This document shows positions 4,401-18,730 of a stretch of 64,000 nucleotides of DNA, in pieces. The stretch covers positions 558,001-622,000 of the forward strand of contig NW_013657676.1 of NCBI RefSeq assembly GCF_000142905.1, read 5' to 3'. This stretch comes from Thecamonas trahens ATCC 50062 (Eukaryota; Protista; Apusomonadida). Position numbers and translations under genes: made by a program. The notes under the pieces were generated by a model that did not search any database, was not told the origin of the DNA, and saw nothing but the letters and a program-made list of their open reading frames with translations. Every line of letters starts with the position of its first letter. Positions within the stretch are counted from its first letter, which is position 1.

Positions 4401-6135
4401 GGTTGAGGTCCGAGACTTCGGCCCGGAGGCCTGCTGCCTGCTCCTCGGCCAGCAGCTTCTCCTCGGCCATGGCCTCCAGCTCACCGGCGGCGTCGGTGGT
4501 CGCGTCAAGCTGGTCGCGCAGGTGCTCAATGTCGTCCTGCAGGCTCGCAACCTCGTCCTCAAGCTCGACAATCCGCGCCTGTGCCGCCGGATACTGCGCC
4601 GACACCGCTGCCAGCTCGTCGAGCTGCCGCTTGTACTCGTTACGGTCCGAGGCCGCGACCTCGCGGACGTCGACCAGTGCGTCACGGAGCCGCTTGTTCT
4701 GCTTCTCCATCGACTTGTAGAATAGCTTCTGCACCGCAAGGTTCTCGGCCGAAGCCTCCTCAAGAAGCGCCAGCGAGTACTCGCCCTCGCGCGCCCGGTA
4801 CAGCTCGACATCCAGCCGCAAGTCCTCGAGCTCCAGCCGGACTGTATCAAGCTCAATCTTGTAGTTGGCGGCCTGCAGTGCGGCAATGTCACGGTCGAGG
4901 TTGATCGCCTCCAGGTCCGAGTCCAGCGACGACAGCCGCGCCACGTCGGCCTCCAGCTGCGCAATCCGCTCATGGCGGTGCGCGAGCTGCTTCCGCTGGC
5001 TCACCACAATCATCGCCAGCTCGTCCGACGGCATCTCGGCCAGCCCGCCTGCGGAGGTGCCTGGGTCGGCAGCGGCAGCGGCAGGGGTGGCGGAGGCGGA
5101 GGCGGAAACGGCCGCCGTGCCACCGGCTTTGGCCGTCTTCTGCGCCGCCTTGAGCTTGGCTTGCAGCTCTTGGCACATCTTCTTATACTTGACCGCCAGC
5201 GCCTTGTACTTGTCGCTATCCTCCGAAGTCGTGGACGCGACTGACACGACCGACGCGGTCTCATCGCCATCGGCCGAATGGCTTGCTGCCGCGGCCTTAC
5301 GCGAGAGGTCCTCGATGAGCGCCTCTGACTTGCGGTAGAGCGCCTTGGCCTTGGCCAGCTTCTTCTTGTCCTCGTCAGTCGCGCTCTCACCAGCAGCTTT
5401 GTACGCAGCCATCTCCTTTCGCAGCCGATCCTTGATCACCTTGTGGTTGGCCTGCCGCTTGGCCAGCTCCTTTTCCACCGCCGAGCTCGCACTAGAGCTG
5501 CCATCGCCGCCGGAAGAGCTTTGAGCTGCGGCCAGCTTTTGCATCAGTGACTTGCACTTGAGCTTGAGCTTGCGGATGAGCTCGGCATCACCGGCCGAGC
5601 CTCCTCCACCAGCGCCGCTGTCACCTCCAGCCGATGGCGACTTTTTCATCTCTGCCTTGAGCTTTGCCTTGAGCTTTGCCACCATGTTCTTCTCCTTCTC
5701 CAGAGCCTTGTTGAGCTCGGCGAGCTTAGCTGCTGCCTCAGCCCCATCTCCCACAGGAGCCACAACAGCCACGGCCCCACCAGCTCCTGCAGCTCTCTCC
5801 AGTGCAGCCACCTTGGCCTCTGCAGCCTCTGCCTTTGCCTTGAGCTTCTTGGCCATCGTCTTGTACTTTTTCACATCGGCCTCCAGCGCCGCAACCTTGG
5901 CCTCCTATGCCCATGTGTACACAGCCCACCAGTGGCAACCAGAGCCCACCAGACACGCGTGAGTATACCAAGTGTAGGGTTATGTACTTGGTGCATATGT
6001 GTGTATACGTGTGTGGTTTGTGCAGGGGGGAAGACCAAGCGGGAGGAGGGGGTGTGGGGCGGTGTGGGGCGTGGGGGGGGGGGGGTGGGAATGGAAACTA
6101 TATGTGGTAGTTGGGAGGGTACGTACGTCTGCCAT
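1466..6135 (-). CDS. DCTN1: Dynactin subunit 1 (p150Glued) homologue; exon 1 6135-6127, intron 6126-5905, apparent frameshift near 1650
   Basis: QNKRLRDALVDVREVAASDRNE, LRDQLDATTDA and TIAQFRVLVADLQ match p150 coiled-coil motifs. The C-terminus in the shifted frame (FGAFGSP...QLVLNEAQFTQLASLMLV*) matches the p150 tail. ATG GCA GAC|GTACGT and TAG|GAG GCC give an in-frame splice. Confidence 0.85.
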
Positions 6136-9998: not shown

Positions 9999-11282
9999 AT
10001 GGAGTGTACTTGGGTTGTCGATGGTGTCTTTGTCACCGCTGACCGCGATATGGTGAACGAGCGGACGAGCGAGGACGCTCAATCCGTCTTTGATGTTTCG
10101 TCCCCACTCACATCAAGCACAAGTGGCGCCGACGCCCGCCCGCGGTGCGATGTGTGTGGCAAGCCGTTCGACGGCTGGTCGGCTGTCTTTGCTCACAAGG
10201 GCTCCGGCGAGAACTGCGATCCGGGCGCGGGCGCTGCGGGCGAAGCCGAGGCGACGGTGACAATGTCTGCGCGCGTCGCGGACGAAGTCCGCGACACGGT
10301 CCACGCTCTTGGCCGCGAGCTGGTCGAGTCTAGCGATGGGCGGTGGAGTATGAAGTATCTGGCGCGGAGCGTCGAGTTTGCGCTAGACCAGCTGACCTAT
10401 GCTCGGTGCAACGCGTACAACCTCGAGCGGTGGTACCCCGCAGTCGAGGCCGCGTACGATGCGGCCGGCAAGCCTCTGCCGACCGCCCGCTCGATCTTCT
10501 TGCCGCTCTCGGACCCCGACATTGACATCCTGTGCAAGACGTTCTCGCGTGGTGAGTTTGGCTCGAGCCTCTCGCGGGCCGAGTCGGAGACGCTCGCGGC
10601 ACTTGAGCGACGGGTCCAGGCCGCAATGGACGAGGCGACCTTGATGTCAACGCGGTTTTTCGTGCGGCTCTCGACGCGCTCGCCCAAGGACGCCGTGACT
10701 AGCCAGGACGGCACCGCCAAGGACGCGCTGGCAGTGACCCGGGCGCGCGAGGCTCTCGCGCTCATCGGCCGCTCGATGCGCTGCTACTCAGACTTGCAGG
10801 CGCACCTCAAGTTTCGGGCTTTGCCCAACTTGCCAGCGATGAACCTCATCTTGCGCGAGTGGGTTGACATGCCGTTTGACTACGAGTTCCGCTGCTTTGT
10901 AGCCAGCGGCGCGCTTACCGCCATCTCACAGTACGCCTGCTTCGATGTGGTGCCCGAGCTTCACGACACTGCGACACTCGATGCGATCCGCGACGCCATT
11001 GTCGAGCTCCACACTTCGCTCGACCCGCTGCTGTCTCTCGACTCGTATGTGTTTGACGTGGTATGGATGCCGGACACGGGCTCTGTCTCGCTCATCGAAA
11101 TCAACCCGTTTGGAGCCGAGCTCTCATCGGGCGCATGCCTGTTCTCTTGGACCCGCGACCGCGCACTGCTCTACGGCGACGAGCCGGCTGCCGGCAGCCA
11201 GCCCGCCGTCCGAGTTCTCCGCGAACTGATCGGCAAGGCCTCTGTCCCGCGCGTGGCACCGTCGGCCATGTTTGGCGTCTGA
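9999..11282 (+). CDS. Cdc123/D123-related (R2K-type) ATP-grasp protein with an N-terminal C2H2-like finger
   Basis: FFVRLSTRSPKDA, LILREW, EFRCFV, LTAISQY, YVFDV and LIEINPFG motifs, plus CDVCGKPF...H. The true start may be ATG 9940 across a frameshift. Confidence 0.8.
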   Translation: MECTWVVDGVFVTADRDMVNERTSEDAQSVFDVSSPLTSSTSGADARPRCDVCGKPFDGWSAVFAHKGSGENCDPGAGAAGEAEATVTMSARVADEVRDTVHALGRELVESSDGRWSMKYLARSVEFALDQLTYARCNAYNLERWYPAVEAAYDAAGKPLPTARSIFLPLSDPDIDILCKTFSRGEFGSSLSRAESETLAALERRVQAAMDEATLMSTRFFVRLSTRSPKDAVTSQDGTAKDALAVTRAREALALIGRSMRCYSDLQAHLKFRALPNLPAMNLILREWVDMPFDYEFRCFVASGALTAISQYACFDVVPELHDTATLDAIRDAIVELHTSLDPLLSLDSYVFDVVWMPDTGSVSLIEINPFGAELSSGACLFSWTRDRALLYGDEPAAGSQPAVRVLRELIGKASVPRVAPSAMFGV

Positions 11283-11569
11283 AGAGTGTAAACGTTGGCC
11301 GCGTCTGCCATGCTTGTCGCGATGACGTTCGCCTGAGCGTGGCAACCGCTGCCACCGCAACCAAAGCACGCGCTTTGCTGGCGCCGCGTCTACTTTCGGT
11401 ATCGCGTCGAGGACCTTGCGACGACCCTCCTGCTCCGTCTCATCCTTCGCGGTTTGTGTCACCTTTGCCTCGCACTGTGATGGTGCGACAGCATTCTCGA
11501 CCAGGTTGTGCTGATCACGTCAACGCTCGTATCACGGCGCACTCCTCTTCAACCTCGAATTGGCCCAGC

Positions 11570-14500
11570 ATGTTGGGCCACGATAGGATTGGAGTGGCCT
11601 TGAGTCTTGCAATGGTAGCGACGACCATACTCACGAGCCACATTGCAGGAGGAATTCTCACAGGCTATGTCCCTCCTATCAATGTGACCATCGTCGGCCT
11701 GTACCCTGTGACAGGTTCACTTGCCTCTCCAGGACAGGATATTGCATCGGCGGCAAAGCTGGCTGTGTCTCACGTAAATGCCGAGCCGCTGCTCCTCCCA
11801 AACGTACGCCTTCTGCAGTTGATCCTTGCCTCCTCCTCCCCCCCATGCCTTCCTCCTTCCCATGGCCACCGCCATGACACCCTCACCCCCCATACCCCCT
11901 ATATCCCCCCCCCGTCCATACCCCCTCCATACCATGCCCCTTCCCCCATCTCAATGTCATTTCCCGTTCTATGTCTCCCATTGGCGTCGGGCGCCCTTGC
12001 TGTGACAAACGCGGCGGAAACCGTTTCACCCTTCCTCCACCACCACCGCCACCACCACTACCTCCACCACCACTACTACTACCACCACTACCACCACCAA
12101 CTTGTGGTGACAGACCTGTTGTTGGAAATGAGACTCATGTGAAGACCATGCTCCGGCTGGTGGGTGTTTAGACTCGGATTATTCTGGAGGCTGTGGATAC
12201 ACAAGCTAGTGCGGCTCAAACAACGTTGTCGTTGCTGGCTACGTTGAGGAACGTTCAGCGCATTGTGGCTATCTCTGGAGCAGCAGTGTCATCGGTCTCG
12301 CGATCTGTGCAGAACATCGTCTCAGTCTTCAATATTCCGATGATCTCGCCAGCTTCAACAGCAGCTGTACTCTCCAACAAGGCATTGTATCCTACGTTCA
12401 TGCGAGTTGTTCCGCCTGACACGCTCCATGGCTCTGCAACAGCGTCGACAATCAAGAGCATCGGCTGGCGGCGAATTGCAACAATCTTTCACGACGACGA
12501 CTACGGGATCTCGTCGAGCCAGTCTTTGGTGACCAAGGCAGTGGAGCTCGGCATCGAGGTCTCGGCGCAGATCTCGTTTCCGTTTGGGACGACCGACTTT
12601 GTTACTGTTGTTGACGCAATAGAAAAGCTCTCGGACACGCACGTCCTGTTCATCGCATGCTACACTTTTGAGGCTGTGGAACTCTTTCGTGAGCTCATCA
12701 AGCGTGACCTGACCACCGGGCGGTTTGTCTTCTTTGGCTCGGATTGGCTCGTCGACGAGTTTTTCGAGTCGGATCTGGACCAAGACAAGCTCCACGGCCT
12801 GCTTGTGCTGCAATACCTGCTTGATTCATCGCCGCTGATGGATGCGTTTACCGACGAGTGGGAGACGCTCAACTCGACCGAGTATCTCGGCGCCGGCGAC
12901 CGTACGTACAGCCAGTTTGCACCGCTCTCATACGACACGGTCATGACTACGGCGTACGCGCTGCAGGCTGCGATCGACGATGGCGTCGATGTGTTTGACG
13001 GCCAGGTCCTGCTTCCGTATATGGCACAGACCACGTTCATTGGGCTGACCGGCAACATCAGCTTCGACGTCAACTACGACCGTATCTCACCGCTGGCCAT
13101 TCGGAACTACAAGGGCGGCGCAGCATTGCAGACGGTCGGCCAGTGGGACACCGCGTCGAACTCGCTGGTATTTACCGACTCGATCATCTACCCTGGCAAC
13201 ATGACACGGCCGCCGCACCTCCCTATTGTGGCGTCGCCCGAGTCTGACAAGCTTTTCATTGTGTTTGTCACGGTCGGCGTGGCCATCATTGTGATGGCGG
13301 CGATCATGCTCACTGTGAGTATAGTGATCATTCGGCGGCGGCGGGCGCAGGTTGCGTCGCTGGAAGAGCAGAACAAGCAGCTCAACCTGGAGGCGCGGGC
13401 ACTCAACTCGCGGCTGGACGTGCTGTCAGAGCAAACAGCGATGGCATCTGGCCGGCAGAGCGGGCCGGTCATTGACATGCCAGTCAATCAGGTGCTCGGC
13501 CTCTTGTGGCGACTGCAAGGCTCTGTCCGCAACCCCATCGACGTCCGCGACATCAACTCGGCCATCGAGGCCATCCAGTCGAACGTCCTATTCACACCCG
13601 AGACCCGCGACGACGCCTCGGTCTCTTCGAACCGCGACAACCTTACCCGTGACTGGATCCGCAAAACGCTCATCGGAGGAACTGGGCCGGCTGCGGCCGG
13701 AACCCACGGTTCGGCCTCGTACACCCGCAGAGGCTCCCACGTCCGGTCCGGCTCGCGGATTCTGCTCCCGATCTCGCCCTCCCCGCCCTCCCCGCTCGAC
13801 TTGGGCGTGTCGAGAGAGACTGCGTTCAAGCCGGCGCCGCACCTGGCACCACTGCTGGAAAACCTGGCGTCGCTAGAGTTTGACATCTTTGCGCTCGCCA
13901 TCCGCGACACGTGCACGCTGCGATCGGTGTTTTTGGCCATCTGCACCGAGAAGCAGCTGTTCACCCAGCTCGGCCTCGACTCGTCGGCTCTGGCACGGTA
14001 CATGATGGTGTTGGACAAGGCGTGCGAGGGCATGTCGAACCCATACCACAACGTGCTCCACGCCGCGGACATGGTCCAGTTTGTGCACTTTCTCCTCTCG
14101 ACCTCGGGCCTGTACGCGGTCCTCTCACCGCTCGAGTCGTTCGCTGCGCTGTTTGCGGCTGCGATCAAGGACGTGGGCCACCCCGGCGTCGACTCTTCAT
14201 ACCTGATCAAGACCAAGTCGGTTCTCGCCATCCGGTACTCGAATCGGTCTGTGCTTGAGCAGCACGCATTGGCGATGGCATTCCAGCTCGCCCTTGCCGA
14301 CAAGTTTGACGTGTTTGCGCCACTGAGCGCCAAGTCCTTTGCCGCCTTTCATGAGCTCGTTGTCGAGCTCGTGATCGGAACCGACATGCACAAGCACGTC
14401 GAGGTTATGTCGCGCTTCAAGATTGCGTTCGGACTCGGGCGTGAGGGCGGGTCGGAAGCATTACCGCAGCATGGCCAGGCACCGCTCCAGGGCTCGCAGC

Positions 14501-15135
14501 TGTTGGAAGGCATCCAGTCGAACGCCAAGCTGAGAACGATTGTGCTGCAGCTGATTGTCAAGATGGCGGACGTGTCGTATCCGTCGCGGCCGTGGGCTAA
14601 GGCCAATTCGTGGGCGCACCGGTACTCACGCGAGGCGTTCCAGCAGGGCAAGCAGGAGCGGGCGCACGGGTTGGCTGTCTCGCCGTTCATGGACGGCATG
14701 GCGTCGTCGGTGGCCAAGGCGCACGTGTCGATGATCCGCATCGTGGCGCTCCCCATGTTCCAGGCCTGGTGCGAGCTCTTCCCCATCGACGAGTGCCTTG
14801 GCCACATGCGACACTGCCTGCGGCACTGGTCGTCGGCGTCGACTGACGAGATGGAGCACGCCCACGAGACGGCGCTCGCGGCCATGGACGCCTTTGACCG
14901 GACATTCTTTGCCTCGGACGGCGGCTCGCCGGTAGTCACCAACGGCGGCATGCAGAAGAGCACGCTAGCGCCCAACCAACCCAACTACATCGAGTCGGTC
15001 ATCTCAGGCCTTCTCGACGTCCTTGACGACGATGAGCTCTGTGAGGAAGATGAGGACAACGAAGCGACGCCGGTCGCGAGTGGGGCCGATGCGGACATCG
15101 CCGTTGCTCTTGACGCGCACGGCGGCGAGGAATGA
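11570..15135 (+). CDS. Venus-flytrap (ANF-receptor/class C GPCR type) ectodomain + single TM + coiled coil + degenerate class I cyclic-nucleotide phosphodiesterase; exon 1 11570-11803, intron 11804-12171
   Basis: Signal-like N-terminus. VFT motifs IVGLYP, AVSHVN, PMISPAST, LSNKALYPTFMRVVPPD, IGWRRIA, DDYG, SYDTV and FIGLTGNISFD. TM about 13250-13330. PDE motifs NPYHNVLHAAD, DVGHPG, LAIRY, TDM and KMAD. In-frame phase-0 intron AAC|GTACGC...TTTAG|ACT. Confidence 0.88.
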
Positions 15136-15175: not shown

Positions 15176-18058
15176 TTAATCGAACCAGCGCTTCTTCTTC
15201 TTGCCACCGGCAGAGGCGAGGACGGCGCGGAACTCGTCGACCAGCGAGCCACCGGCGTTGTTGCCACTCTCAGCCTTGCGCTTGCGCGATTTGTTGTCGC
15301 TGCCACCAGCGTTCTTGCTGTTCTTGCTCCTTCTGTGAGCATCCTGGGACGACGACGAAGCGGCGGCGGCAGCAGCGGCCTCGGCCTTGCGCTTGGCCTT
15401 GTTCGCCTTGCGACGCGAGAGCTTCTTCTGTGGCACTTCGGGCTCGACGACAGCGGCGTCATCGAGGGCATCGCGGGCGGCGTTGAGCTTGCGGCGCTTG
15501 GCGGCGCGTCGCTCATCGTTGGACGGCTGCTTCTCGATCGAGTCGTTGCCGGCGGCGAGCTCACGCCGGCGCTTGCGAACCTCGTTGTCTGAGCCAAACA
15601 GCGAGAGCTTGTTGCTCTTGGCAGGCGCCTTTCTGCCAGCGCGCGAGGAGGCGTTTGCGGACTCGGGGGCAGTGCGCGAGGCTTTGACGGAGAGCTCGTG
15701 GCGCTCGATGGCCTCCTTGGCGTCGACAGCAAACTCGACGATGAGGCGCCGTTCGTCAGAGTAGAACTCCGGATTGTTGTTGAGGAGCTGGAGAGCCTTG
15801 AGGGCGTCGTCGTGATGGGCAAACTGGACGAAACCGTAGCCGCGCGAGCGGCCGATGCCTGCGGCGGTGATGCGGTTCTTGTCGCGGACAATCTTGACCT
15901 GCTTGATGATCTTGTGGCGGACATTGCGGTTGAGGGCCTTGAGAATGTCGGCCTTGAGCTCCTTCTCGGTCTTTGTCAGCGGGATGTTGCGAATGGCGAG
16001 GCGCTTCGTAGAGACCATGTTGTTGGGGTTCTTGAGAGCAGCCTGCTTCTCCTCGTAAGCCTTGACGCGCTTCTTGAGGTCCGACTCGGACATGCCGACG
16101 GCGGCGGCGGAGCCCGGGAGGATGACTCCCTCGTTGGCGATGGCCACGTTGCGGGCGTCGCGGCGCTCGGCCTCGGCACGGGCCTCGGCGCGGTGGTTGA
16201 CCAACTCGCGCTCGCGCGACTTGTCGACGGCGAGGACGACAAAGAGGCGGCGCTGGTTGAGGAAGATGCCCTGGCCGGCGTGGGCCGGCTTGCCCTCAGT
16301 GTCAAGCTCAGGCTCGTCGTCGTCGACGTCCTCGTCGTCGAGGCGGAGGCCCATCGAGGCGACGACCGATCGGCGGTTGAGATGCGACTTGGACTTTGCG
16401 GTGGACTTTGAGATGTTGAGGTCGTCCGAGCGGATGGCGGCGGCATCAATGGCGGCGGCGGCCTGCGCGGCGGTGTCAAACTTGACAAAGCCGACGCCGC
16501 GTGACTCGCCCGAGACCTTGTCATACACGATGCGGGCAAAGAGGACGTTGCCAAAGGCCGAGAAGGCCTCGGCGAGCTCGTGGTTCTGGGTCTCAAACGA
16601 GATGTTGCGGATAAAGACGGTGCGCTTCTCGTTGACGTCGGACGGGGCCTCGCGTGCGGGCCGGGCCGGGCGGTCGCTGGACTTTGAGCGACGGCGGGCG
16701 TCCGAGTCCGAGTCCGAGTCGCTGTCCGAGTCGTCCGAGCCTGAGCCCGAGTCCGAGCCCGAGTCCGAGCTGGCGTCGCTCTCGTCGTCCTTGACGGCGG
16801 CCTCAAAGACGCTCTTGGCAAAGGCAAAATCGACGGCAATGGGCCTGCGGAACGGTTGTGCGGCGTTGACGGCGGCGATGGCGGCGGCGGCGTGCTCGCG
16901 ACGCGAGAACTCAACAAAGCCAAAACCGCGCGACTTGCCCTCGCTGTTGAGCGGGAGGTGGACGTCGACGAGCGGCCCGTGGACTTCAAAGACGGCGCGG
17001 AGCTTTGCGGCGTCGACAGACCACGGCAGGTTGCGGACGATGAGGCGGCCGGGCTTGCCCGAGACCTTGGCCTTGCGCAGCGGGTCAAGGACAATCCATG
17101 CCTGGAGCGGGACGCCCTTGTGGATGCGGTCGTCGAGGGCTTCGACGGCAGCGCGGGCGAGCTTGGGGGTGAGGAACACAAGGTGGGCCTGAATCTCTGC
17201 GGGCGACTCACCGGCGAGCTGGCCGAGCATGTTGAGCTCCTCGGGCGTGAGCTTGTCGACGTCGACGGTGTGAGCCGATGAGGCGTTGTACTTTTCCGAC
17301 GAGAGCGGGCCCGAGGTCGGCGTCACCTCCATCTTGTCGCTGCCAAGGACAGGAAAGGCGAACGAGTGGAGCGAGCCGAGCTTGATCTTGAGAGCCTTCT
17401 TGAGCAAGACGCGGAGGGCCTGCTTGCCCTTGGTCACCTCGGAGATGGTAAAGCCGCGAACAACGACCGTCCGGGCAAGCATCTTGTTCCTCGTCCACGA
17501 CTTGGCCTCGACGGGTGCGCCGGACTTGCCCTTCTTGCCCTTCTTGCTCTTCTTCCCCTTCTTGCCCTCCTTGTGGCTCTCGGCCTTGGCCTTTTCCGAT
17601 GCGAGCAGCTCGAGCTTGTCGGTAGCCGGATCGGCGGCCTTGCGGGCAGCCTTTGCCTCTTCGGCCTTTGCCTTTGCTAGCGCAGCCGGAGGCATGGCGA
17701 CGGGAGCCTTCTTTGCCTTGGCATCATCATCATCCTTTGTCCCGATGACGAGACCAGGCGCATCCGATTCACCGTCAGCACCAGGCAGCGGCTCCCGAAG
17801 ACGACGAGAAGAGTAGACGACAGTCAGAGAATGACCCTTGACGGATCGCTTGTGGAACTTTGAGATGGCCTTTGCGGCATCTTCCTTGAGCGCAAAATGA
17901 ACGTAGCCAAAACCACGCGAGACCATTGAGCCCTTTTCGGTGACCACAAAGGCATGTCGGAGCGGACCGACTTCAGAGAAGAGCGCTTCCAGCTGTGCAG
18001 TGGTAAACGACGGCGGGAGGCCACGGACATGGACCATAGTCTCGGACTTCTTCCCCAT
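15176..18058 (-). CDS. RBM28: RNA-binding protein 28 / Nop4 (multi-RRM nucleolar protein)
   Basis: RRMs with SRGFGYVHF, RLIVRNLPW/SRGFGFVEF, TVFIRNI/SRGVGFVKF and RLAIRNIP/SRGYGFVQF; ALQLLNNNP, RLIVEFA and a C-terminal RWFD. Likely start MGKKSET at 18058. Confidence 0.92.
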   Translation of the reverse strand: MGKKSETMVHVRGLPPSFTTAQLEALFSEVGPLRHAFVVTEKGSMVSRGFGYVHFALKEDAAKAISKFHKRSVKGHSLTVVYSSRRLREPLPGADGESDAPGLVIGTKDDDDAKAKKAPVAMPPAALAKAKAEEAKAARKAADPATDKLELLASEKAKAESHKEGKKGKKSKKGKKGKSGAPVEAKSWTRNKMLARTVVVRGFTISEVTKGKQALRVLLKKALKIKLGSLHSFAFPVLGSDKMEVTPTSGPLSSEKYNASSAHTVDVDKLTPEELNMLGQLAGESPAEIQAHLVFLTPKLARAAVEALDDRIHKGVPLQAWIVLDPLRKAKVSGKPGRLIVRNLPWSVDAAKLRAVFEVHGPLVDVHLPLNSEGKSRGFGFVEFSRREHAAAAIAAVNAAQPFRRPIAVDFAFAKSVFEAAVKDDESDASSDSGSDSGSGSDDSDSDSDSDSDARRRSKSSDRPARPAREAPSDVNEKRTVFIRNISFETQNHELAEAFSAFGNVLFARIVYDKVSGESRGVGFVKFDTAAQAAAAIDAAAIRSDDLNISKSTAKSKSHLNRRSVVASMGLRLDDEDVDDDEPELDTEGKPAHAGQGIFLNQRRLFVVLAVDKSRERELVNHRAEARAEAERRDARNVAIANEGVILPGSAAAVGMSESDLKKRVKAYEEKQAALKNPNNMVSTKRLAIRNIPLTKTEKELKADILKALNRNVRHKIIKQVKIVRDKNRITAAGIGRSRGYGFVQFAHHDDALKALQLLNNNPEFYSDERRLIVEFAVDAKEAIERHELSVKASRTAPESANASSRAGRKAPAKSNKLSLFGSDNEVRKRRRELAAGNDSIEKQPSNDERRAAKRRKLNAARDALDDAAVVEPEVPQKKLSRRKANKAKRKAEAAAAAAASSSSQDAHRRSKNSKNAGGSDNKSRKRKAESGNNAGGSLVDEFRAVLASAGGKKKKRWFD

Positions 18059-18730
18059 CTTTGCACCGTCTGGAAATAGGTGGTGGTTTCGGACTTGGTG
18101 CTTTGGCGTGAGGTGGCGGTAAGTGGTTGGTGCGTTGGTTGAGTTGTGTGAGGATGGCGGTGGGATGGATGGATGGATGGGTTTGGGGTGGTGGCGGGAT
18201 TGGGGGGTTGGGGGTTGGGGGTTGGGGGTAGTGATCATTGGCGGGATTGGGCCGGGGGATTGAGGAGGAGGGATCTATGGAGGGGCTTGGTGGTGGGGGT
18301 GGTGGTGGTGGGTGGGGGGGGTAATGATCGGGAGGAGGCGCAGTGATCGGATCGGATGGGAAGGGAATCGAGTCGGGATCGGATCGGATGGGAAGGGGGA
18401 GGGGGAGGGGGGTTAGGGATGCGATCTGGAGGAGGGCATTGTCCAGAGCGGGCGGGATCGGGGCAGTGATCGCGAGGTAGACCAATCTGTAAAGGAGTGT
18501 GTGGGAGAGTACATGTCTTAAAATCGGCTTTCATGCCCCCCCCCCCCCCTCGCCCCGCCTCAGGACTCAACATTTCATTTTCACCCTCACCACCAACCAC
18601 CGACCACCATTCGCCTTTACCTTGTGCCATCGCGAGCGCACGCGCTGCCACTCGGTCACCCACCCGTCCCCACCCCCCCTACCGCCACCCACCCCTACCC
18701 CCCCTCTACCCCACCCAGCCCAAGTTGGGC

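Follow-up and report, generated by a model that had tools for sequence, protein, structure and literature searches.

Membrane cyclic-nucleotide levels are set by receptor cyclases and, for light, by rhodopsin-phosphodiesterases. Receptor guanylyl cyclases and the receptor adenylyl cyclases of trypanosomatids act as dimers. In the choanoflagellate rhodopsin-phosphodiesterase (Rh-PDE) the sensor is a light-driven, multi-pass rhodopsin of eight transmembrane (TM) helices and the catalytic site is intact; to our knowledge no other fusion of a membrane receptor, as sensor, to a phosphodiesterase (PDE) has been characterised. A chemoreceptor wired to a PDE fold, which would place an outside ligand on the degradative arm of cyclic-nucleotide signaling with no G protein between, would be an arrangement missing from this set. 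Here we describe such a gene in Thecamonas trahens ATCC 50062, a member of the apusomonads, a protist lineage sister to Opisthokonta. The gene occupies positions 11570-15135 of the window, by which we mean the whole 64,000-nucleotide stretch that was analyzed (forward strand of contig NW_013657676.1, positions 558,001 to 622,000, assembly GCF_000142905.1). It encodes a Venus-flytrap (VFT) ectodomain, a single TM helix and a class I PDE fold whose metal site is degenerate. On balance, and with moderate confidence, we favor a receptor that probably senses amino acids and carries a dead or weak PDE as its output module.

The initial annotation proposed that one open reading frame (ORF) encodes the entire receptor after splicing, and the exon coordinates indeed match the 1065-amino-acid (aa) model P0001 held by NCBI and EukProt for this strain, to which exon 1 and exon 2 are identical letter for letter. 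That record bears the automatic name 'cAMP-specific phosphodiesterase-4 B isoform'. The exons were searched separately, the joined protein being the database record. The ORF listing gives a single open frame at 12193-15135 that can be extended back to 12172, and since both domains share one 987-codon frame, joining the VFT to the PDE needs no splicing. The locus, referred to as C4 in genome comparisons, is laid out as follows.

11570..11803, + strand: exon 1, 78 aa (the first 78 aa of P0001), with the start codon, a signal-peptide-like segment and the first flytrap strand and helix
11804..12171, + strand: intron of 368 nt, GT..AG (AG at 12170-12171), CT/CCA-rich and of low complexity
12172..15135, + strand: exon 2, 987 codons (to 15132) and the TGA stop (15133-15135), with the VFT, TM helix, coiled coil, helical motif, linker, PDE-like domain and acidic tail
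12193..13113, + strand: ANF_receptor (Venus-flytrap) core, Pfam E 1.4e-49, six-frame match 4.0e-50
13249..13335, + strand: single TM helix, exon-2 aa 360-388, Kyte-Doolittle mean up to 2.97 over 19 residues
13336..13446, + strand: RRRR stop-transfer and juxtamembrane coiled coil, exon-2 aa 389-425 (coiled coil aa 393-425, one helix in model residues 2-38)
13477..13605, + strand: conserved helix-turn-helix motif MPVNQVLGLL...AIEAIQSNVLFTPET, exon-2 aa 436-478, predicted helical
13606..13896, + strand: linker rich in Ser, Pro and Gly, of low conservation and for the most part predicted to be disordered
14044..14784, + strand: PDEase_I (class I PDE) domain with degenerate metal site, Pfam E 2.6e-61, PDE4-like fold
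14872..15132, + strand: C-terminal tail with an acidic end (DDDELCEEDEDNE), poorly conserved

Both domains have significant profile support in one frame, as expected of a single gene: within the frame 12193-15132, Pfam returned ANF_receptor (1.4e-49), Peripla_BP_6 (5e-19) and PDEase_I (2.6e-61; score 207.8 bits, cut-off 24.8). Exon 2 lacks the first ~35 positions of the flytrap profile; exon 1 matches these weakly (Peripla_BP_6 2-35, E 0.0012), and both lobes are thus covered. The hydrophobicity scan placed an N-terminal signal-like segment at exon 1 aa 7-25; besides the TM helix, a second window exceeded the threshold marginally (19 residues, aa 647-665, mean 1.70) and lies within the PDE fold. 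All four N-glycosylation sequons (NVT, NST, NIS and NMT) are in the ectodomain before the TM helix. Because of the N-terminal signal-like segment, the one strong TM helix followed by RRRR and the position of the sequons, the topology is type I: the flytrap faces the outside and the PDE fold lies in the cytosol. For the cytosolic part, an AlphaFold2 model made from an alignment of 59 sequences (mean predicted local distance difference test score, pLDDT, 83) has a long juxtamembrane helix (model residues 2-38), a helix-turn-helix (49-63 and 67-81, pLDDT 81-90) that corresponds to the DMPVNQV...SNVLFTP segment, and a disordered stretch (118-150, pLDDT below 50). Its PDE-like part is a confident all-helical domain that superposes on the catalytic domains of PDE4B and PDE4D with Foldseek TM-scores (target-normalised) of 0.85-0.91. 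Every element listed in the initial annotation, namely signal peptide, VFT, one TM helix, RRRR, coiled coil, the helical segment DMPVNQVLGLL...AIEAIQSNVLFTP and the PDE fold, was therefore recovered by Pfam, the hydrophobicity scan or the model.

The same layout is repeated within the genome and beyond it. Relatives were found by an exhaustive HMMER scan, word-based searches being insensitive (they returned the query itself, one Nowakowskiella paralog and a few partial matches). A six-frame search located ANF_receptor at only three loci in the T. trahens genome, each with PDEase_I about 1 kb downstream. The two paralogous VFT-PDE loci are:

C37:221043-223562: AMSG_07791 (P0155), one 953-codon frame with the same layout
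C3:542667-545235: AMSG_11618, read in three frames

Two apparent 1-nt frame shifts interrupt the C3 copy (at about L002:3150-3175 and 4565-4580, where L002 is G000:C3:540000-547500), and the NCBI annotation of AMSG_11618 comprises its middle 459 aa only. At both frame switches the alignment continues without interruption, and both lie in short runs rich in G+C/T (GGCCGGC at one; GCCGCC followed by five T at the other). Because the contiguous homologous sequence leaves no room for introns, we read them as sequencing errors or else as two genuine 1-nt frame shifts in a very young pseudogene. Two environmental clusters from marine metagenome and metatranscriptome assemblies, P0007 (1056 aa, 37% identical) and P0008 (1076 aa, 34% identical), have the complete layout including the juxtamembrane module.

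The PDE domain is closest in sequence to PDE4C (1.5e-50) and PDE8A (1e-43). In PDE4D2 numbering, the zinc ligands are H164, H200, D201 and D318, of which D201 is a magnesium ligand as well, and H160 is the general acid, while the purine is held by the invariant glutamine Q369 and the hydrophobic clamp F372. The histidine of the HD motif (H200) is among the metal ligands that define the HD superfamily. In the alignment to PDE4C and PDE4A, the window protein has AIKDVGHPG opposite AIHDVDHPG and AKAHVSM opposite EKSQVGF (KAHVSM against KSQVGF). The H200 equivalent is accordingly a lysine (codon AAG at 14167-14169, two substitutions away from the His codons CAC and CAT), the Q369 equivalent a histidine (14722-14724) and the F372 equivalent a methionine (14731-14733). 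Of the full metal set plus H160 only H200 is missing, and the YHNxxHAAD and GHPG motifs, the Glu-His of LENHH (here LEQHA), TDM and the D318 equivalent are kept. RNA contigs were taken from two metatranscriptome studies, one of seawater (X1) and one of the subsurface (X2), and show presence and splicing, not expression level or transcript ends. Contigs from both studies (X1, 13992-14722; X2, 14044-14274) span the Lys codon with no difference listed there, so the lysine is not an assembly error. With one of its four zinc ligands replaced in this way, the PDE-like domain has probably lost its catalytic activity wholly or in large part.

Changes at the metal site extend throughout the apusomonad clade. 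The residue at the H200 position and the further changes in each member are:

Window copy (C4): K; no change in other metal ligands
C37 paralog: K; H164R and D201N
C3 paralog: K; D318 equivalent lost
P0007: I; D272E (TD motif), D318 equivalent lost
P0008: R; H160R, H164R and D201G

The HD-motif histidine is absent from all five members; the window copy has eroded least. By comparison, histidine stands in this column in 89 of the 103 PDE domains compared, the exceptions being the apusomonad clade and one other cluster, and the invariant purine-holding glutamine is present in 97 of the 103. Within T. trahens, all ten residues checked are intact in 10 of 14 PDE domains; the three VFT-PDE paralogs and one domain at C6 deviate. 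The latter (G000:C6:307419-308078, - strand; H164R, H200F, D201Q, Q369R) is a fourth degenerate PDE domain of this genome and lies ~3 kb from an ORF with two cyclase domains (G000:C6:302505-304841, - strand). An early loss of a metal ligand shared by the clade, later piecemeal losses, a conserved fold and purifying selection together form a pseudo-enzyme signature.

More distant proteins share the domain order and differ at the active site. ANF_receptor, one TM helix and PDEase_I are found in three chytrid proteins, P0038 (KAJ3121466.1) and P0176 (HK098_003786) of Nowakowskiella sp. JEL0407 and P0154 (KAJ3116179.1) of Physocladia obscura, as well as in P0021, encoded on a 71-kb eukaryotic contig of Logan assembly SRR23287145, and in the environmental protein P0066. 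The apusomonad juxtamembrane motif is absent from all of these. Their catalytic residues are canonical, as are those of P0124, a cluster of 8 environmental members (~1085 aa) in which a bacterial-type solute-binding domain (SBP_bac_1/SBP_bac_8) precedes one TM helix and a canonical PDE. Judging from its domains, P0124 couples a PDE to another kind of binding-protein ectodomain. In chytrid fungi and some other eukaryotes the VFT-TM-PDE layout probably occurs in truly catalytic form. In catalytic-domain trees (FastTree and IQ-TREE) the apusomonad proteins formed one clade with support of 100 and 99 and the chytrid proteins likewise formed one strongly supported clade. The apusomonad, chytrid and P0021 domains fell apart on a backbone without resolution, and in the approximately unbiased test a single clade of all VFT-PDE domains was not rejected (delta lnL 6.6, p 0.395). 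The layout may therefore stem either from one ancient fusion or from several independent ones.

Could the window protein nonetheless be an active receptor phosphodiesterase, in which the flytrap ligand switches real hydrolysis of cyclic AMP (cAMP) or cyclic GMP (cGMP) and the lysine is tolerated or the metal centre altered? We consider this unlikely, although it is the main rival to the preferred reading. The general-acid histidine, three of the four zinc ligands, the magnesium-bridging aspartate, H204, E230, T271 and D272 are all kept, the fold is confidently PDE4-like and the coding sequence is under purifying selection; moreover, since the five distant proteins of the same layout (P0038, P0176, P0154, P0021 and P0066) have a fully canonical site, the layout itself is compatible with catalysis. 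Against this, the HD histidine, which 89 of 103 PDE domains possess, is gone from every member of the clade, other ligands have been lost piecemeal in the sister lineages, and both purine-holding residues, Gln and Phe, are replaced in the window copy. Such a pattern of loss is that expected after catalysis has been lost.

The preferred reading of a dead or weak output module has its own weak points. Eight of the residues compared (H160, H164, D201, H204, E230, T271, D272 and D318) are kept in the window copy, for which a weak, residual or unusual PDE activity is possible on sequence grounds. By a rough count over the five members the clade keeps 13 of 20 of four core residues, and the presence of all four in the window copy is for this reason not significant in either direction. 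At the other end of the molecule, the glutamine of the amino-acid recognition motif discussed below is missing from the window protein, and the ligand class is read from sequence. Finally, rigid mechanical coupling to the PDE fold is unlikely according to the model, because the helical motif is separated from that fold by a largely disordered linker of ~100 residues, and this renders the transduction step speculative.

A receptor of this kind might also retain the pocket for a different purpose, as a non-catalytic sensor that binds cAMP or cGMP uncleaved and so integrates the outside ligand with inside cyclic nucleotide. The fold is retained, as is the greater part of the pocket lining, and the T. 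trahens genome (28.7 Mb) has a very cyclase-rich cyclic-nucleotide system, with ~50 matches to class III cyclase domains against 14 PDE domains. We nevertheless regard this as improbable. The Q369 and F372 equivalents vary among the paralogs (H/M, Q/I and L/I) and the domain probably does not bind the phosphate-holding metal ions, so that a conserved nucleotide-binding role is not indicated. The initial annotation had suggested that the ligand directly controls cyclic-nucleotide breakdown or binding. Breakdown is disfavored by the His-to-Lys, Gln-to-His and Phe-to-Met replacements in the window copy and by the losses across the clade; binding comes closer, yet the residues that would mediate it differ among the paralogs.

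The ectodomain points to the class of ligand. In the PDB its sequence comes closest to the mGluR5/4/7/8/1, GABA-B1 and CaSR flytraps (E 4e-20 to 1e-15), not to those of natriuretic-peptide receptors. The mGluR5 stretches GSSSVA, YSATS, VVPSD, GNYGESG and LGSDGW align with AVSSVS, PASTA, VVPPD, DDDYGISS and FGSDW of the window protein, at the positions of the mGluR1 contacts to the alpha-carboxylate and alpha-amino groups (S165, T188, D208, Y236 and D318). We then applied the 8-residue amino-acid recognition motif of Acher and Bertrand, S-x22-[TS]-x13,14-R-x4-D-x2-Q-x24,25-Y-[GA]-x74,84-[ED], as quoted in PMC12965686. The window protein matched at 7 of 8 positions, its Gln being replaced by His; on the + strand the motif residues are S (12289-12291), T (12358-12360), R, D (12418-12420), H for Q, Y-G (12502-12507) and D (12742-12744). 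All 8 positions matched in the C37 paralog, in P0008 (env8) and in P0021, and P0066 kept the first seven. The same seven were tested in the C3 copy, where five match and Asp is replaced by Glu and Gln by Arg, and the three chytrid proteins, whose flytraps are more divergent, did not match. Because the motif is kept at 7 of 8 positions in the window protein and at all 8 in its C37 paralog, the likeliest ligand is an alpha-amino acid or a close derivative. Sensing of free amino acids would be a plausible use for a bacterivorous gliding flagellate. The ectodomain has one Cys only and no cysteine-rich domain. No 7tm_3 domain was found in the receptor protein by Pfam, nor in the genome by a six-frame search whose control was equally silent. 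No VFT locus coincides with any of the ~50 genomic cyclase-domain matches, and the ANF-type flytrap appears to be used in Thecamonas only with the PDE fold.

Between the membrane and the PDE fold lies the juxtamembrane helical module. Across five lineages the coiled coil is 41-76% identical, above the flanking TM helix and linker, and the helix-turn-helix 19-79% identical, the highest value being that to the C3 paralog. The corresponding ranges are 36-44% for the flytrap, 30-47% for the PDE fold, 18-39% for the linker and 14-21% for the tail; TM helix, linker and tail are less conserved than the flytrap and the PDE fold. Within the T. trahens genome the module occurs only in the three paralogs. 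Two multi-pass membrane PDEs of other organisms, P0077 (E 2e-06) and P0037 (E 4e-04), show a weak resemblance to it behind their last TM helix. The helical segment was initially likened to the regulatory helices that precede the catalytic domain in PDE4 and PDE8, a likeness that our sequence searches, with long-form PDE4 as the reference, did not bear out. A phmmer search of residues 389-489 against all PDB chains, including those of PDE4B and PDE4D that contain UCR2, gave no PDE match at E up to 10, and no Pfam family matched the module at the same threshold; such matches as there were in PDB and Pfam were at chance level and were set aside. Foldseek with the cytosolic model ranked long-form PDE4B first, but at a root-mean-square deviation of 15.3 Å. 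The juxtamembrane module, whose conservation is the highest of any part of the receptor, is likely to be the key transducing or effector-binding element.

These features allow a working model of a receptor with an amino-acid-sensing ectodomain and a degenerate PDE. VFT receptors and PDEs generally act as dimers, and by analogy the receptor is probably a dimer as well. An amino acid would bind between the flytrap lobes, whose closure would re-orient the two TM helices together with the parallel juxtamembrane coiled coil, and the change in the coiled coil would in turn change how the conserved helix-turn-helix packs or is exposed. The output would be non-catalytic or weakly catalytic, with the PDE-like domain as a pseudo-enzyme module for partner binding or for the regulation of other proteins and not as an efficient ligand-gated hydrolase. 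For the last step we favor, speculatively, a helical module that docks on or releases either the PDE-like domain or a partner, much as UCR2 caps PDE4, over rigid transmission of the receptor-cyclase kind.

The environmental RNA indicates that the gene is in use. The X1 and X2 contigs are ~99% identical to it and tile 11554-11803, 12172-13143 and 13360-14812, with gaps. Coverage of 11554-11803 comes from an X1 contig, and one X1 contig joins 11803 directly to 12172 (GT..AG, 368 nt skipped), with 29 nt on the short side followed by Illumina adapter. RNA depth inside the intron is zero in both studies, which together with the splice joint confirms the intron predicted at 11804-12171. The receptor gene is thus transcribed and spliced in nature. 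Between the gene and the environmental strain we counted 12 differences, 8 synonymous and 4 non-synonymous, over ~802 and 2393 sites respectively, which gives a crude ratio of non-synonymous to synonymous rates (dN/dS) of ~0.17. By this ratio the gene is under purifying selection and not decaying.

One might still suspect an artefact, that is, two neighboring genes merged into one model or a decaying pseudogene. The RNA contigs are short and none, in X1 or X2, runs from the VFT through to the PDE, and the C3 paralog has its two apparent frame shifts. The missing contig matters little, however, because both domains sit in one uninterrupted frame. That 987-codon frame is mirrored by the single 953-codon frame of the C37 paralog with the same layout, environmental proteins of 1056-1076 aa that were assembled independently have this layout too, RNA contigs tile the VFT, the linker and the PDE while the intron is empty, and synonymous changes are in excess. 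We therefore hold an artefact to be highly improbable and the suggestion effectively refuted.

Several further observations concern the locus and its relatives. The neighboring genes are ordinary. Upstream of the receptor gene lies a gene for a D123/CDC123-type ATP-grasp protein (9999-11282, + strand); downstream, in convergent orientation, is a gene for a 1020-aa protein with four RRM_1 matches (15176-18238, - strand), whose stop is 41 nt from that of the receptor gene. The intron, which includes runs of CCACCACC at 12028-12105, would in several frames pass for proline-rich ORFs. A scan for bacterial promoters and terminators upstream of the receptor gene returned nothing, such a scan being irrelevant for a eukaryote. 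At its 5' end, before 11554, the X1 contig carries 30 nt that match neither the window nor the genome at up to 2 mismatches, and a spliced leader or upstream exon was dropped as an explanation for want of any such genome match; the stretch may represent a strain-specific 5' untranslated region or other strain difference, a chimeric contig or a library artefact. Among other proteins recovered by the scan, six giants of 1950-3930 aa (P0010, P0011, P0012, P0014, P0016 and P0017) have 5-10 matched stretches each, the best of which matches the flytrap region of the query and places them among the flytrap's top matches. In P0046 (Logan assembly, 714 aa) an Ion_trans match at residues 75-195 (profile 5-120, voltage-sensor-like) is followed by a canonical PDEase_I domain, which makes a voltage-sensor-PDE fusion possible.

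In open-access papers and bioRxiv we found no description of a fusion of a VFT or ANF_receptor domain to a PDE, of a chemosensory receptor-type class I PDE or of a class I pseudo-PDE, nor any description of a Thecamonas phosphodiesterase or ANF-PDE protein. Thecamonas and ANF_receptor are mentioned together in one paper, PMC3971589, whose discussion is confined to 7tm_3 receptors. The initial annotation knew of no characterised VFT-PDE receptor, and none turned up in the same literature. The architecture is not unique: public databases already contained two paralogs as well as environmental and chytrid proteins that have it, unremarked and under automatic PDE4 names. What appears new and unexpected, from the residues lost, is that the Thecamonas branch is catalytically degenerate. 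A bolder reading, which we consider doubtful, is that these proteins constitute an undescribed class of ligand-gated (probably amino-acid-gated) single-pass receptor PDEs in apusomonads, chytrids and other protists. In its strongest form the Thecamonas proteins would still be regulated PDEs, with a non-canonical, Lys-containing metal site.

The arrangement is real, expressed and recurrent, occurring in three paralogs, in marine relatives, in chytrid fungi and in a variant with a solute-binding protein. Apparently catalytic versions in chytrids and apparently non-catalytic ones in apusomonads form a natural experimental pair, the latter being a candidate class I pseudo-PDE signaling module. The apparent confinement of the flytrap to VFT-PDE proteins in Thecamonas bears on how class-C-type amino-acid sensing was deployed before animals. 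A ligand-controlled PDE, if true, would be of interest to tool builders in the way that rhodopsin-PDEs are.

Set beside known systems, the receptor resembles NPR-A/B, GC-C and the trypanosomatid receptor-type adenylyl cyclases in being a single-pass type I protein with an ANF_receptor-type ectodomain, a juxtamembrane or coiled-coil transducer and a cytosolic cyclic-nucleotide enzyme fold. As a layout, the proposed mirror image of a natriuretic-peptide receptor cyclase is apt. It differs from receptor cyclases in that the output fold is a class I PDE and not a class III cyclase, a metal ligand is lost and Pfam finds neither a kinase-homology nor a class III cyclase domain, and from natriuretic-peptide receptors in an ectodomain nearer to those of mGluR, GABA-B and CaSR. 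These class C G-protein-coupled receptors are its nearest ectodomain relatives and share with it the Ser, Thr, Arg, Asp, Tyr-Gly and acidic residues of the recognition motif, whereas the Thecamonas receptor has neither the cysteine-rich nor the seven-transmembrane domain and crosses the membrane once. The catalytic domains of PDE4 and PDE8 are the closest matches of the cytosolic domain in both sequence and structure; unlike them, it has Lys for the HD histidine, His for the glutamine and Met for the clamp phenylalanine, is anchored in the membrane beneath an ectodomain, and has no UCR1/UCR2 or PAS domain detectable by Pfam or by phmmer against PDB. With the choanoflagellate Rh-PDE it shares a membrane sensor fused through a helical linker to a C-terminal class I PDE, the sensor here being a single-pass chemoreceptor ectodomain. 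The chytrid, P0021 and P0066 proteins have the same domain order and, in contrast to Thecamonas, canonical catalytic residues. All parts of the receptor are thus known; by analogy, their combination is a counterpart of the receptor cyclases and a chemical analogue of the rhodopsin-PDEs.

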